A stretch of DNA of 59,139 nt, the filler included, from Trichosphaerium sp. ATCC 40318 (Eukaryota > Protista > Tubulinea): assembly GCA_038496445.1 (NCBI GenBank). It is 3 parts of 3 records of this genome, joined end to end, with 100 filler letters (N's around TTAATTAATTAA, not from the genome) between each part and the next. Parts side by side here need not be neighbours in the genome. Positions count along the whole stretch, not along the records: positions 1 to 27,283 come from JALMLS010000543.1; 2 more parts are not named here. One strand, given 5' to 3'. A program made the position numbers and the translations under genes. Positions 3,903 to 17,650 of the stretch are shown here, piece by piece (positions within the stretch are counted from its first letter, which is position 1; every line of letters begins with the position of its first letter). The notes below the pieces were generated by a model that was given only the letters and a program-made list of their open reading frames with translations, searched no databases and was not told the origin of the DNA.

Positions 3903-4586
3903 CTAGTAGCCTACTAATGCATTGACACCTTCATCTGTTATCAGTTCACAGCCATGAAAGTGAATAGAGTGTGCACCCTCCAATTCTTTTAGACCCTCAT
4001 CTGTTATTGAGTTGCATTCCTCAACATAGATTGTGTGTACACCTGCAAATGCCCTCAAACTTTCATCTGTTATTGTTGTAGCTGATAAATCAATCTCATG
4101 TACACCTGCCAATAGCTTCACACCTTCATCTGTTACATTTGTACCTGATAAATCAATGTACTGTACGCCTGCTAACACCTTGATGCCCTCATCTGTTATT
4201 AAGTCAAATTCTGGCAAGATAATTGTGCGCACGCCTCCCAACACCTTCAAGCCTTCATCAGTTACATTTGTACCCGATAAATCAATCTCATGTACACCTG
4301 CCAAGTACTTCACACAGTCGTCCGTCATTTGTAGCCAATGGCTCAATTCAATCGTTGTATTCCGAAGTAATGGACTACCAGCAAGGATCTTTGCTTCTTT
4401 TTCTCTTCTAATACGCATTCTACCATATCCAATGTGTTTGTGGATAATTTCATGTAACACGTGGCATGTTTGCCCTGCGCGAAGTGTATACCTCCCTTGT
4501 TTGAGAATATGCACTAGCATTTCAGTTGGAAGTGAAATAAGGTCTATTACCTCCTTGTTCGGATAGATGCTGTCTTTTTTATTCAT
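3903..4586 (-). CDS. F-box-like + leucine-rich repeat protein (intronless, 227 aa)
   Basis: N-terminal LISLPTEMLVHIL followed by ~6 repeats of GVHEIDLSGTNVTDEGLKVL. Confidence 0.85.
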   Translation of the reverse strand: MNKKDSIYPNKEVIDLISLPTEMLVHILKQGRYTLRAGQTCHVLHEIIHKHIGYGRMRIRREKEAKILAGSPLLRNTTIELSHWLQMTDDCVKYLAGVHEIDLSGTNVTDEGLKVLGGVRTIILPEFDLITDEGIKVLAGVQYIDLSGTNVTDEGVKLLAGVHEIDLSATTITDESLRAFAGVHTIYVEECNSITDEGLKELEGAHSIHFHGCELITDEGVNALVGY

Positions 4587-4958: not shown

Positions 4959-5334
4959 GCAGCATCAAAAGCAGTTTTTACTTTTTTTATAAGTCTGCAG
5001 AACGGTAGTTTCCTTGGCTCGTGCCATTAGACCCAAGGTCAGTTTCGCAAGGTATTTCGTCAATCCACTTGAATAAACAAGTACCACTCTTATCAAAAGA
5101 ATGCTCACTTTGTAAATATACCCAAGTTGTATTATGTCGTCTTAGCCATTTACGCTGTGACTGCACCGGTGACATTTATTGTATGAACTTTGACATGCAA
5201 ACATACTAATTAGAAGTGCTGTTATTCAAACTCGAACACAAAGGTTACAGCAATCAGATAATGATAAAAATGCTTAGTTTATTTTGAGCATGAAAAGCCA
5301 AGAACAGATGCTTTATTAATTCAAAAACAATTTA

Positions 5335-5408
5335 CAACAAGTTTAAAAGTCAGGTAGTGCAGGCCCAAAAGAAAGGGATTTATGCACATCCTTCATGGCA
5401 AGTTGTTG
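5335..5408 (-). promoter_or_regulatory. Eukaryotic SECIS element (form 2) in a 3'UTR
   Basis: Minus strand reads CAACAA cttgcc ATGAA GG AT GTGCA T AAA T CCC tttctttt GGG cc TGCAC TA CC TGAC ttttaaac TTGTTG. This gives helix I, AUGA/UGA quartet, helix II, unpaired AAA and an apical mini-stem. Confidence 0.85.
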
Positions 5409-5433
5409 GTCTAGTTGTCGAGGAGCAAGCCCA

Positions 5434-6383
5434 TCACTTCGGTTGTGCTATTAAACATAGTGAGTATTGCAAACAACATTGCTTACCAAGTAAGCCACAA
5501 TTAGCTATGTCTATAACATCGTCATCGGTAGTATTAGCTGCTTTTAATTGCTTCAATAAATCACTACAATTTCTAAACCACTCAAAGCCTTCTGCGAATC
5601 CCTACCACGACAATCACTATTTCACGTTTTTTGAGAACAGTTTTACGTACTTGCTTTGTCAGTTTCCCTATATCCTTCATACCACCCCATATGTCCGGAT
5701 TGGAATTTCGCTTCCATTTGTTTTACAAGCTCAAATTTCGCCATACACTTTATAACCCAAGCGTCAAAAGCAGCATAGGAAAGTTGCATCTCCATCTTTT
5801 TTTGAAATCAACAAGATTAATTTATCACGTGACTTGGAGAAAAAAAAATAGGCGTACATTTTCGCGAACAGGATCGATAGTACCAAGTTTATACTTTCCA
5901 TCAGGTGACAGTAAGGAGATGCTAGCGAATCCTTTTTTAAAATGAGGGTGAATTTTTTGAATTCGACGAAACTCCTTAGTTGCTGATATATCATTAACAG
6001 GGAACATATGACTTCCATCTGATACATTAAGATCATAAGGTATAAATTCTCTATTTATACGACGAATAACACGTTCATCAGAGAGTAACCCGCTCCGCAG
6101 GATTCTACCTTTTTTCGAAATCAGCGCAACAAAAAAAAAAAAACACGTGTTTTTTGGCCTTACCTCCAAGTCAACAAACTCCCGTTTCTGGTTTTTCAAA
6201 GTAATCAACAACAATTTCCATAAAAATAGGTTTATTCTGAGCCATTGCAGCGTTTTTAACTTCACTTGCGTTTTTGTTCCAGTTTATACTTGTCCACCTT
6301 TGATATGGCTCATTTGATAATGTTGTACGTATATATGATGAAGTGGCATTATACTTATCCTTACAGACTTGTTGTCTAGCCAT
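5434..6383 (-). CDS. Thioredoxin-fold selenoprotein, SelN-like Cys-Sec motif
   Basis: ATG 6383 ...NKPIFMEIVVDYFEKPETGVC-TGA(6171-6173)-LG, intron 6109-6163, then GRILRSGLLSDERVIRRINREFIP. Resembles SelN SCUGSGRTLR..L.LLNESF. SECIS starts ~25 nt after the predicted stop (5434-5436). One downstream intron needs a GC donor (GCAAGT). Confidence 0.8.
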
Positions 6384-6567: not shown

Positions 6568-8666
6568 ATGCATTGGACAACACGAACTCTCACGCTAGTT
6601 TTATTCGCATTGTTGGAAAATATATTTAAAAACTGTCAAGGCAAGAATCAACCTGTTCATCACTTCATCGCCAAGAGCTGTGCGTTCTTTGTTGCTCACA
6701 AAACAAACACTACAATTGTTAAGCCAACTCCAATTCTATTCACTTCAAACGCTGTCATCATAGCAACCACTAAAAGAAACAACATACATTCCAGAATAAT
6801 TATAAATGTATTCCAGGGAACGCCAGTCGTTTTTGAAGTATTTGTGTGTTGTCACGTTTTTTACAGCAACAGTATGCACCAGTGGTATGTTTCGAAAAAC
6901 AAATTCCAAATACTGTTTTAACGCCAGAAGCTGACTTCTTTCTTTAGAAAAAGAAGGTAATCCACTCGGTATGGCAGCGCACTTTTCAGGTGATATGGGA
7001 GATGGCGGTATTCTTATTGAGGGCGAAGACTTCAGTAGCAACTCTATAATTTCAGTTGGCGCCTGGATAAACTTTGACAAGTTCGTTGCCTTTTATATTA
7101 ATAAGCCCTTTTCTATTCTAATGCGAGTAGAGACTGTTCTTTCGCGGATTGCTACCTACACACTATCTTTTCGACAATATCCTTTACAGGTCATGACAAT
7201 GGTAGTATGTTTAGCGTTGGTAATTTCTTCCCCTCACTATCCAAGCGGCAACTTGCGTTTGATACTTTCAACAATGGCTTTTGGGATCAATATCCTAACA
7301 CCTTCGATTCAACCATTCACCCACAAGTGCCTGCAAATGAATGGGTATGTAAGATTGTGAAGGAAATGTTCTGATCAATACACAGATTTATGTTTATTGT
7401 TCACGTGATGTAGCCAAAAATAAGATTTCACTAAAGACAATATCAAACAACACAGTAGTCAGAAGTGTATACGGCTTACATCCCCTCTCTCACTCAGACA
7501 AGGTACACAATCCCTTAAAATAGTTAGTACTAATGAGTCTTTAACAACAAAGGGATATTTCGTGATTGGTTGTCTACGTAATGGTACTGTAGCTCGATTT
7601 GGGTTCTCTGTAAGCTATTTGCTTTAAATCTATATATCTTATTGAACCACTGTTGTAGGGTGACATTGACAACTTGAGTATTTGGAACAAGTACTAACAA
7701 CAACCTTTTCACTATTTTGTAATTGTTTTAAAAAAGGGAGCTATCAGATGACGAGCTTCTTGAATTGGCATACTCTCCTAATACAATGAATCCTGATTTA
7801 CTTTACTTTTTTGACTTTGACAACGGATATGGTCCAGTTATTTCCACGAACAATGTTACTGTGTCTATAGTTGGCGCAAATGTTCAACAGCGAAATTCGT
7901 ACAACAGTTATTTTTATGTGGTCCTAATTCAGTTTAGTTCTCTTCAAATAGACTCGCCAAGTGCACCGCCTACTCCTCCTACCGGTATGAGTCCAACTGT
8001 AGTGCCAACAAAATCACCAACTAAAGCCCCAACAATTGCACCAATGAGTGGTCCTACAACCTTTGGGTTGCCACTAACTATTGAGATAAACGGAACAATT
8101 GCAATTAATGGAAGTTACGTACTCACAACAAACCACAAGGTCACTTTTCGTGAAGGAGGACGTGTCAACATTACAGGTATTGAAACACCACTCATACTTT
8201 CTCACATGTTTTAAATCAAGGTTGCTTTACTCCTTCTGGAACACTTGTTGTCCATACGGATGAGAAACAAGACACAGAACGCACTTTATTTGAGTACAGT
8301 TGTATTAATTCAACAGATGGATTCTCAGATATACTTTTTGTTCATAGTGATAGTTGTAAAAAAGTAGAAGGTTCAATCAAACAGACATCTTCAAAGTTCT
8401 CAGTTGCTATGAACATCAAAAACACGTGTTCAGATTGGTGGAAGTACTTGGTCATTGGCCTAGCTGTGTTGATCATACTATTGATCATTGTTGCAATGAT
8501 TATCGCATACTATGTACCAGTACGTTTAGATAGACAAAAAACAAATAGTCACCTTCGTAAACACTTATGTTTTATTGAACAGTCACTCAGAGCAAGAATA
8601 TTTCCTTTTGAAAAGAGACCAATATACGCAGGTGAAGCAATTCAGGCAGCAAAGGAAACAAAATAA
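6568..8666 (+). CDS. Single-pass membrane protein with ConA-like/LamG domain and Pro/Thr stalk, multi-exon
   Basis: Exon peptides ISVGAWINF, VPANEW|IYVYC, FVIG, GDIDNLSIWN.ELSDDEL, LLYFFDFD; stalk PTKSPTKAPT; TM WWKYLVIGLAVLIILLIIVAMII. 5' end uncertain. Confidence 0.65.
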
Positions 8667-14923: not shown

Positions 14924-17650
14924 TTACTCCTGTTCCATAGCGTCTACATCAGCTTTTTTGAATTGCATAAAGTAACGATCATCTCTACCACGTGATTTCC
15001 ACATACTATCAAACCAAGAAGTACCATAAGCCTAAGTAAAATGTGAGCAACCAGAAACTTAATTAATATAAAAAAAAACACTTACAGATGGAATGCGATC
15101 GATCATGTCTTTGTTTAATGCTGTCTCAAAACCACTTTGTTTTAGTTCAGAAGCTAAGCATTCTGCGAAAGTCTTATCATCAGTAACAACAGTTACTAGA
15201 CCGTCTTCAGTAAGCATATCATAGACCTTGGAAAAAAATAAGAAAAAATCCATTGAAATAAAAGTACAATAAAACAACCGTTTAATAATACGCCATTGTC
15301 ACATGGTATTAGAAAAAAATTTATCGTATATGATGTAGGGAATATGTAAATGATGAATATCACATAAGATAATGGGACATAGTCCAGAAAAGAAGAAAAA
15401 TCGAGAGAAGAAAATGTACAAAAAAGAAAGTTTGAGTTTGAATTAAAGATTTGATTGTTCAGTTGGGTGATGATGAAGGAACGTTTAGAAAGTTCCATAT
15501 CGTTTGATATATATTTTGTAAATAACTTACGATATTAAATAAAGATGCATTGAGGAACACTGGCTTGAAATGTTGTAAAGCTGGTTCAGGGAAATTGACA
15601 AAAACTTCTTTGACTGTGTTGCTCTTAGAATAATTTTCTAATACCTCCTTGGCATCACCACATAATGCACGGATATTACGCGCTTTATGAATGACCATAT
15701 TCAACCTAACAGAAAACAATCAGACTCAAAGAAAACGCACAAGAAGTCAAAACTGTTTGTTTTCATTGAATTGCGAAGATAACTTTTTATCTCATGTTGT
15801 GGTTGGTTCGTACCATGTATAGAAAATACGGTCTTTGCGGAGTTCCATAGCTACCCAATTTGTCTTTTTATCGCTCTTTGCCTTCTCACAGATCCAGTTT
15901 CCGTTACCACATCCAATTTCAACTTTGACAGGGTTGTCGTTGTTAAATAACATTTCACTGTTCCATTCAAGCTTTGGCATCTCTGTGTCAGAATAAAACA
16001 CAAGTTTAGAGTTCTTTGGTCCTAGAATCTGAAGATAAAATCAGTCTCAAACGCAAGACAGAAGAGGAGAAAAATGAATAGTGTGACGATTTTTTAGTGA
16101 AGAAAAAAATAGTGTAGTTTCATGAAAAAAACTGGGCGTTTTGGCGTACATTGTATGCTTTTCCTTTTCTTTTTATAATCCAAGCCTTTAACATATCGTA
16201 GAAATCCATATTACCGAAAGCTAATTCAGTATCTACTTCGACAGAAGGAGATTTTAAAAAGTTAAGAAGTGCTGCAGACTCCTTTACTTTACCTATTGAA
16301 CAATTTAGAAAATCAAAACTTTCACGGCCCTTCACTTGTAGATACGGGTTTAAAACTTTCAGAAAGTGATCTTATACGTACCTAGAATACCGGAGCATAT
16401 AGCCATATCCAAATAAGTTGATTTGAAGCGAACAAAATCACCTTTTTTTAAAACTTTTAGGTAAAATAAAACTTTATCCCATCGAAATGTTCTTGCTGAT
16501 AATTTAAGCATTATATTAACCAGAGTATCATTAACAATATGTTGTTCATAAGCATATTTAAATAATTTTTCTGCTTCCTCAAACTCACAATCTCTAAAAA
16601 AAGGAGTGAATGAAGGACATAACACAAACATGTTGCGCAAAATAGAAAAAAAATCAAAGTAAAAACAAAATGTCTAGGAGAGCATCCAACGCGTTTTATG
16701 TACCTTAAAAATCCACGTAATAGAGTACCATACGTTCTAATATTCGGAATAACACCATGTTCATGCATTTCATTCAAAACAACCAATGCTTGATCCATCA
16801 TCATTTCATTGACGTAGCCTTTGGGACAAAAAAATTGCTGTCAGAATCACATATTTTATTGGTCTTTAAACGTACCTTTTAGCACTGTTGTAAATACTAC
16901 TGTATTTGGTTTAATCCCAGGAGTATTTTTAAGTTCTTCAAAAGTATCATTAAGCTTCTGGGAGTGCCCAATTCTAAAAAACAATTTTTAGAACAAAAAG
17001 TGTTAAAAAACAGGTCAAGTACTAACCTGGCGTAAACATTTAGGAGCGCTGAGTACGAGTATATATCAGGTTTAAGTCCAGTTTCAAGTAACTGCTCCCA
17101 TAGGGCCTCTGCAAGCTCGACATTTCGATATTTTGCGGCATCATTCATGTGACGGTTGTATAGTTTTAAATTGCTTCTCTTACGCGTTGTAGTAAGGATG
17201 CGCACCATTTTCTCGCGCCAAACGTCAACTGGAGGAAGATCTTCTGGAGAAAAAATGATTAATAAACTGTTTATACGTTTTAATAACGTAAATAGCTTTA
17301 TGAAAGTATGCTTACGCTCTTTATCGGGTCTAAACCTGTCTTCATCGCCTTGACCTTTTTGAAGCCCTCTACCGCGGCTTCGTACAGATACATCCACTTG
17401 TCTGAATGAGGGATTCTCCGCTGGGCGTTCTACACGCGTTGCCTGTATTTTTCGCTTTTTTCTTGCTTTAACACGCTATCAGTACAATAGTCTAAAATAC
17501 TTTCGTACCAGGTATTGGAGTATCTCTAGCACTATCTATGAGGTTTTTCCAGTTTGTTGTTTTCAATTTATGGTCAAATTCCATGTGCCGTGGGCGCTTA
17601 TAACCGCCATCGCGATTATTGCGATTATTTCTTGATTTGTTCCTTGACAT
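14924..17650 (-). CDS. Pentatricopeptide repeats fused to a TrmB-type tRNA (guanine-N7) methyltransferase (PPR-TGM-like)
   Basis: PPR motifs GLKPDIYSYSALLNVYA and GVIPNIRTYGTLLRG. C-terminal VEIGCGNG..AMELRKDRI, VFVNFPEP, VVTDD, YGTSWFDSMW. Confidence 0.85.

Follow-up and report, generated by a model that had tools for sequence, protein, structure and literature searches.

Selenoprotein N (SelN) is a type II endoplasmic reticulum (ER) membrane glycoprotein of animals, with a length of 556-590 amino acids (aa), an EF-hand, and an SCUG motif in which U is selenocysteine (Sec). Thioredoxin reductase is another carrier of a Cys-Sec pair, which sits on the flexible C-terminal tail of this flavoenzyme. 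Families of the Thioredox_DsbH/Thioredoxin_7 group, taken here as DsbH, YyaL-like N-domains, DsbD-gamma, AGR2/ERp19, and UAS domains, use a CxxC motif or are without a redox site, and the N-terminus of helix alpha1 is the usual seat of the nucleophilic Cys in the thioredoxin CxxC. In human SelN the Sec of the SCUG motif is residue 462, arginines are located at positions 466 and 469, and pathogenic changes have been reported at G463, R466, and R469 (PMC12839072, PMC3541580). In the literature SelN is treated as an animal-specific protein (PMC2375036). This paper describes a gene on the minus strand of a 59,139-nucleotide (nt) stretch of DNA of Trichosphaerium sp. ATCC 40318 (assembly GCA_038496445.1; three parts joined with filler; hereafter the window), which very probably encodes a thioredoxin-fold selenoprotein with Sec at residue 71, inserted by recoding that depends on a Sec insertion sequence (SECIS), and belongs to a widespread family with Sec or Cys in this column, the CULGGR family.

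This Cys-Sec thioredoxin-like family is widespread, seemingly uncatalogued, and systematically truncated by annotation. The locus adds a real selenoprotein gene of the kind that routine annotation cuts at the UGA, and the work exposes a large family that is split in two by gene callers and is common in Planctomycetota and microbial eukaryotes.

Gene structure and the in-frame TGA

The gene extends from 6383 to 5434 on the minus strand and consists of five exons that add up to 735 nt in frame, corresponding to 244 codons and a TGA stop (Table 1). The ATG at 6383 opens 70 codons ending in GGA GTT TGT, followed by TGA, CTT GGA G, and the donor GTAAGG. The TGT-TGA pair in thioredoxin-like sequence that a preliminary description of the locus had pointed out is present at 6176-6171, and the coding continuity over the next intron that it had claimed was also recovered, as the frame past the 55-nt intron 1 resumes as G-R-I-L-R-S-G-L-L-S-D-E-R-V. 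Exon 1 encodes the N-terminal half of the domain (EPYQRW..INW..KPIFMEIVV), which can be aligned to homologs, and the predicted protein has 24 residues ahead of the start of the conserved domain.

All four introns have GT-AG borders, with lengths of 55, 62, 59, and 39 nt. The 39-nt intron 4 is backed by an 11-nt insertion or deletion relative to a sister copy of the gene that falls inside it, by an intron at the equivalent place in a Cys-containing paralog, and by the length of transcript-confirmed introns of the same genome (approximately 36-64 nt). For intron 3 an alternative acceptor at 5603/5602 was considered, which leads to an early stop and loss of homology; it was discarded because the frame of exon 4 is homologous to the C-terminus of P0002, the product of the Cys-containing paralog.

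Paralogs and transcript evidence

The genome assembly that was searched comprises 70.3 Mb in 642 contigs, with the window gene on contig C386, and contains three further copies of the family, on C342, C27, and C154. Single-exon translations or natural paralog proteins served as queries in the similarity searches. The C27 paralog is 39% identical in exon 2 and reads N-V-C-TGA-L-G-G-R-L (with TGC-TGA), has its intron placed differently, and carries a SECIS-like hairpin approximately 20 nt past its stop, while the C154 paralog (34% identical; P0002) has the sequence I-A-C-L-G-G, in which Cys occupies the Sec column. Database products of these two paralogs derive from the MMETSP transcriptome, and the two transcript-mapped paralog genes have 8 and 4 short introns.

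The transcript of the C27 paralog (L021, 1376 nt) is 98.5-100% identical to the genome and is spliced at the predicted sites. The string TGC-TGA-CTG-GGT-GGG stands in frame at positions 751-765 of this transcript and is followed by 163 codons, and the 3' end lies a short distance past the SECIS. The gene caller cut this transcript into products of 251 aa and 158 aa that flank the TGA, the second of which begins right after the Sec codon. From this paralog transcript we infer that the TGA is likewise retained in the mRNA of the window gene.

The copy on C342 (C342:914-4162, L002) is 96.5% identical to the window gene over 3.2 kb, flanks included. Intron 1 holds most of the local differences between the C386 and C342 copies, and intron 4 of the latter contains an insertion of 11 nt. 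Moreover, exon 1 of the C342 copy has two 1-nt deletions in homopolymers, corresponding to window positions 6278 and 6226. Its SECIS core is unchanged, and the two differences in this element lie outside the core and both helices. Possible explanations of the C342 copy are a haplotype that has diverged, a pseudogene of recent origin, and assembly errors at homopolymers.

The family in other eukaryotes and Planctomycetota

Profile A1, an alignment of the three exon-2 equivalents, was used to search 1.84 billion proteins and retrieved 123 relatives at E<=1e-3, including 48 at E<=1e-10. Approximately 100 of these 123 start at residue 1-3 at about profile position 3, directly past the Sec column, and those post-Sec relatives that were fetched typically begin with M-R-x-x-x-L-S-D. 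A TGA occupies the Sec column in all five contigs that were opened (L021, L024, L025, L026, and L027). In the latter four, an upstream open reading frame (ORF) terminates at an in-frame TGA that lies 6-15 nt ahead of the annotated start, and the sequence is strongly conserved on either side of it; for example, L024 reads ...KPVFIEIIVGRLADAGSDVC-TGA-LGGRLMRTTALSDERV, and L025, L026, and L027 are analogous. The truncation by standard annotation that had been foreseen for the window gene is thus visible in the L021 product and in the approximately 100 relatives that begin just past the Sec column.

Cys-aligned homologs, which had been named as a means to check the reading, were also encountered. 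The Sec71 column holds Cys in paralog P0002 and in forms with CC-LGGR or VC-LGGR, and full-length relatives with Cys in this column carry CCFGGR, CCLGGR, ACLGAR, or SCLGSR. The SCLGSR form occurs in two eukaryotic metagenome proteins (P0100 and P0106), fused C-terminal to a tyrosine-kinase-like domain, which could be a sign that these proteins act in the cytosol in connection with signalling.

Of 301 sampled Planctomycetota genomes, 93 yielded matches at E<=1e-5, and most of these matches are interrupted by a single TGA. Among the best 14 loci, 11 have TGA in the Sec column and 3 have Cys. The Sec motifs include EC-U-LGGRILRG, YC-U-LGGRLLRS, and HC-U-LGGRITKS, the Cys forms CCLGGR and VCLGGR, and one subgroup is without the preceding Cys (FQ-U-RGYYGMRG). 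Signal-peptide-like N-termini are found in the full-length bacterial Cys forms that were retrieved and are absent from the window protein and its paralogs. The family had initially been taken to be small, an expectation that is contradicted by its spread in microbial eukaryotes and Planctomycetota as seen in the profile A1 search and the genome sample.

Two further observations concern the bacterial members. In each of three Planctomycetota genomes (G230, G214, and G243), the N-terminal half of the profile matches at 4-7 separate places. Most of these matches have one in-frame TGA, and most are located in open frames that are 350-520 aa long. The numbers suggest that selenoproteins of the Thioredoxin_7 type have expanded greatly, perhaps with further families among them. 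The member at L027:1-55 (GCA_029260825.1, JAJDCM010000249.1) lies approximately 1.1 kb downstream of a T4_deiodinase-like gene, the T4_deiodinase family being one that also has Sec members, and an 8-bp hairpin 15 nt past its TGA is a candidate bacterial SECIS.

The family can be summarized by the motif KPIF(strand)-loop-C-U-L-G-G-R-x-[ML]-R-x3-LSD-x2-VI-x2-IN-x2-F[IV]P-x3-N[VI]T-x2-GFP, and the blocks used to test membership were W-x-I-x-W...KPIF, C-[UC]-L-G-G-R-x-[ML]-R, LSD-x2-VI-x2-IN-x2-F[IV]P, and N[VI]T-x2-GFP. The first three blocks are present in the window protein and its version of the last one, NVSDGSHMFP, is degenerate and contains two inserted residues. The CULGGR family is not covered by any model of Pfam or NCBIfam, and the four exon translations of the window gene gave no match in Pfam. 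A word-index search with exon 2 gave no match either, and one with a 48-row alignment returned two members of that alignment only, the low-complexity words of its first row apparently being dominant. P0050 as a query found no match in the genome contigs, and a metagenome locus scan yielded one weak locus. Finally, the examined part of a 2026 table of 119 prokaryotic selenoprotein families has no CULGGR or DsbH-like entry, the remainder of that table being covered by search terms.

The SECIS element and the 3' end

The preliminary description had placed a canonical SECIS just past the stop. A hairpin indeed starts 25 nt past the stop of the window gene, and its unconstrained minimum free energy (MFE) fold has exactly the type II SECIS shape. 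Helix I is formed by CAACAA (5408-5403) and TTGTTG (5340-5335) and is followed by an internal loop. The core consists of ATGA (5396-5393) and GA (5351-5350), with an 11-nt 5' arm of helix II, and the apex contains an unpaired AAA (5381-5379) and a CCC/GGG mini-stem. A simple finder that combines pattern and pairing reported the same element at 5408-5335; its chance level is 2.4 matches per 54.6-kb shuffled window, counting both strands, or approximately 0.007 per 150 nt.

Equivalent SECIS-like elements follow the stop in three Sec-form mRNAs (L021, L024, and L025), and the finder reports none in the Cys paralog. A poly-A tail is present on L024, whose SECIS is of the GUGA type, and the AUGA SECIS of L025 bears a close likeness to that of the window gene. 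Alignment of the four elements with MAFFT/RNAalifold was unsuccessful, as they are too divergent. The transcript of the C27 paralog ends approximately 25 nt after an AATAAA located directly 3' of its own SECIS.

Sec machinery and alternative readings of the TGA

With respect to the Sec machinery of the genome, the assembly encodes a tRNA-Sec(UCA) with the anticodon loop CUUCAAA, which scores 61.7 bits against an Rfam gathering score of 47 and which ARAGORN did not detect. A multi-exon SepSecS gene, every exon of which scores above the family cut-off, and SelD/SPS exons are also present. Of the machinery that had been expected, these three components were thus found, and the matches for eEFSec are ambiguous.

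Several observations weigh against a selenoprotein reading of the locus. No transcript of the window copy (C386) was recovered, and part of the small gene group may be decaying because the C342 copy has deletions in exon 1. Neither the whole window nor the 3' untranslated region (UTR) by itself gave a SECIS family when scanned against Rfam, the output being limited to sub-threshold noise, and the isolated hairpin has a modest folding z-score (-1.45). Moreover, the eEFSec search by means of TIGR00475 gave matches that cannot be separated from EF-1alpha-like genes, and the protein is a putative thiol/selenol oxidoreductase, a function that we infer from fold and motif only. The Rfam result is outweighed by the comparative evidence.

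The absence of a window-copy transcript and of an Rfam match to the hairpin, together with the frameshifts in the sister copy, would also fit a TGA that is a true stop, in which case we would be dealing with a pseudogene, or with two ORFs unrelated to each other, and the hairpin would have arisen by chance. Such an explanation is very unlikely, since the sequence stays conserved across the TGA without a break in paralogs, in protist mRNAs, and in bacteria, canonical sites and frame are kept at all four introns, both the C386 and the C342 copy have kept an intact SECIS core, and tRNA-Sec, SepSecS, and SPS/SelD are present in the genome.

UGA is reassigned in some protists. Reassignment of TGA to Cys or Trp in this organism would make the codon an ordinary sense codon and would agree with the Cys of the paralog at the same position, yet it is highly improbable: the window gene itself ends in TGA under an exon model that has transcript support, the ORFs of the paralog transcripts stop where homology to relatives stops, the canonical tRNA-Sec(UCA) is accompanied by SepSecS, and a SECIS accompanies the TGA in every Sec-form mRNA and is missing from the Cys form. 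Recoding of the TGA to Sec is supported by conservation on both sides of the codon, the SECIS, the Cys homologs, and the C27 transcript that keeps the TGA, and the hidden selenoprotein that had been proposed for this locus was thereby upheld.

Fold and proposed mechanism

For P0002, the natural Cys paralog, AlphaFold2 modelling with the family alignment gave a mean predicted local distance difference test score (pLDDT) of 84.5 and a predicted template modelling score (pTM) of 0.77. In the model a thioredoxin-like core precedes a C-terminal region that is helical, and Cys83, the equivalent of Sec71, is located immediately before helix 84-91. Foldseek searches with this model retrieved the Thioredox_DsbH domains 3ira and 7tkv and DsbH (2ju5) as best matches, followed by the DsbD-like C-terminal domain 3f9u, the UBXD7 UAS domain, and DsbD-gamma, with ERp19 and AGR2/3 ranking lower. 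A weak sequence match to 3ira was also obtained with a profile search of the PDB, and family members gave weak Pfam matches to PF03190/PF13899, which exceed the threshold in the bacterial protein P0038 alone (31.9 bits versus 27). This model thus predicts a thioredoxin-like fold that most resembles those of the Thioredox_DsbH/Thioredoxin_7 group.

The product would be a 244-residue thioredoxin-fold selenoprotein in which UGA codon 71 is recoded to Sec by the eukaryotic SECIS pathway, the 3'UTR hairpin presumably recruiting SBP2, eEFSec, and Sec-tRNA(Sec) to the ribosome. Sec71 is predicted at the N-terminus of helix alpha1, in place of the nucleophilic Cys of CxxC and directly preceded by Cys70, and the conserved arginines at Sec+4 and Sec+7 would line the same helix. 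Cys70 and Sec71 would most likely cycle between the selenolate/thiol state and a Cys-Sec selenenylsulfide, like the GCUG of thioredoxin reductase: Sec71 may attack a substrate disulfide or an oxidised thiol, and Cys70 may resolve the intermediate as the Cys-Sec selenenylsulfide.

Feature coordinates and other features of the window and genome

Table 1. Features of the selenoprotein gene, in positions of the window
Feature	Position	Strand	Remarks
Exon 1	6164..6383	-	ATG at 6383; 70 codons, Sec, L-G, and first base of a Gly codon
Cys70 codon TGT	6174..6176	-	Adjoins the Sec codon; Cys also in L021, L024, L025, L026, and most Planctomycetota members
In-frame TGA (Sec71)	6171..6173	-	TGA in this column in 5 of 5 opened contigs and 11 of the 14 top Planctomycetota loci
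Intron 1	6109..6163	-	55 nt, GTAAGG...AAAAAG
Exon 2	5858..6108	-	G-RILRSGLLSDERVIRRINREFIPYDLNV...; core of profile A1
Intron 2	5796..5857	-	62 nt, GT-AG
Exon 3	5651..5795	-	Helical region after the thioredoxin-like core; LSY..F pattern as in P0002 and P0016
Intron 3	5592..5650	-	59 nt, GTACGT...CGCAG
Exon 4	5487..5591	-	Ends in ...NCGLL; compare ...KTGLLG in P0002
Intron 4	5448..5486	-	39 nt, GTAAGC...AATAG
Exon 5	5434..5447	-	Includes the TGA stop, 5436-5434
Type II SECIS-like element	5335..5408	-	By pattern and MFE fold
AATAAA, likely polyadenylation signal	5312..5317	-	18 nt past the SECIS; read from the sequence

The downstream neighbour of the selenoprotein gene is a single-exon ORF of 227 aa (3903-4586, minus strand) that contains leucine-rich repeats (LRR_6, E=2e-15); its N-terminus resembles an F-box at a score below the threshold. 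Further along the window, an ORF at 16897-17397 on the minus strand has a near-threshold pentatricopeptide repeat (PPR_2, 29 bits versus a cut-off of 30) and is probably one exon of a larger gene. On the plus strand, a weak match to the H/ACA small nucleolar RNA SNORA27 at 8539-8663 (25.7 bits versus a gathering score of 64, E=1) is probably noise. The GC content is approximately 36-37% across the window.

At the level of the genome, no RuBisCO large subunit or light-harvesting complex (LHC) genes were found in the assembly, which suggests that the source is a heterotrophic marine protist. EF-1alpha-like genes are present in many copies (on C134, C388, C86, C419, C58, and others), and the copy that was compared with the databases shares no more than 60% identity with any EF-1alpha there, which marks it as an unusually divergent paralog. 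The sole COX1 match in the assembly, at C309:3755-4807 (L028), has 20 internal stops; it has the appearance of mitochondrial DNA that was copied to the nucleus and has degenerated, and the assembly apparently does not include the mitochondrial genome.

Comparison with known selenoproteins and thioredoxin-like families

The best structural matches of the CULGGR family, obtained with paralog P0002, and its only ones at the sequence level, are with Thioredox_DsbH (PF03190, DUF255) and Thioredoxin_7 (PF13899), with which it shares a strand (KPIF...), a loop, and an active site at the start of helix alpha1. In contrast to these families, the first Cys of CxxC is replaced in the window protein by Sec, the second by Gly, and an extra Cys precedes the Sec. 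The bacterial selenoproteins of the Trx7 type, represented by VPGUxxT (NF041383) and Trx7/PDZ (NF041199), are also Thioredoxin_7-like. Members of the CULGGR family score 11-18 bits on NF041383, NF041199, and NF045694, for which cut-offs are 275-805 bits; those of the first two are 275 and 300 bits, and their motifs are VPGUxxT and CxxU, whereas that of the family described here is CULGGR. With the GCUG of thioredoxin reductase, the window protein has in common an adjacent Cys-Sec pair that is able to form a selenenylsulfide and Gly-rich surroundings, but the pair is located at the active site of a thioredoxin fold, 173 residues from the C-terminus.

The likeness to SelN comprises a vicinal Cys-Sec pair, a thioredoxin-like domain, SECIS-dependent recoding, and presumed reductase chemistry. 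Moreover, C70, U71, R75, and R78 of the window protein reproduce the SelN spacing of Cys-Sec, Arg at +4, and Arg at +7, so that both arginines are placed as the disease-mutation sites Arg466 and Arg469 are from Sec462 (PMC12839072, PMC3541580). In these respects the relation to SelN that was proposed earlier agrees with the published residues, whereas homology at the sequence level was not established. The flanks of the pair differ, the window protein having VCUL, with Val before and Leu after the pair, where SelN has SCUG, with Ser and G463 (PMC3541580). The earlier remark that the protein is much shorter than animal SelN and lacks its N-terminal region was correct: it is a protist protein of 244 aa with close bacterial relatives, as opposed to the membrane-anchored animal protein of 556-590 aa. 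No transmembrane segment was found in the window protein, nor an EF-hand in the Pfam scan of its exon translations, and no SelN-sized protein was among the relatives retrieved with profile A1 at E<=1e-3.

The CULGGR protein might nevertheless be a short pre-metazoan relative of SelN, to which animal SelN later added a membrane anchor and an EF-hand. Kinship of this kind, which we regard as possible without favouring it, would be in line with the Cys-Sec pair in a thioredoxin-like setting, the spacing of R75 and R78, and structural neighbours that take in ER thioredoxin-like proteins and a UAS domain; against it stand the Leu in place of Gly after the Sec, the missing EF-hand and transmembrane segment, the lack of a SelN-sized relative in the profile search, and the description of SelN as animal-specific (PMC2375036). 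By the same tentative reasoning, the CULGGR family may represent a non-animal lineage of the SelN catalytic domain. SelN would then not be an animal invention, and an ancient Cys-Sec reductase of the Thioredoxin_7 type, shared with or acquired from bacteria, would have gained an anchor and an EF-hand. If true, this would give SelN a deep evolutionary origin, and the small soluble members from protists and bacteria would be homologs suited to structural and enzymatic work, in which the chemistry of a protein linked to human myopathy could be studied conveniently.
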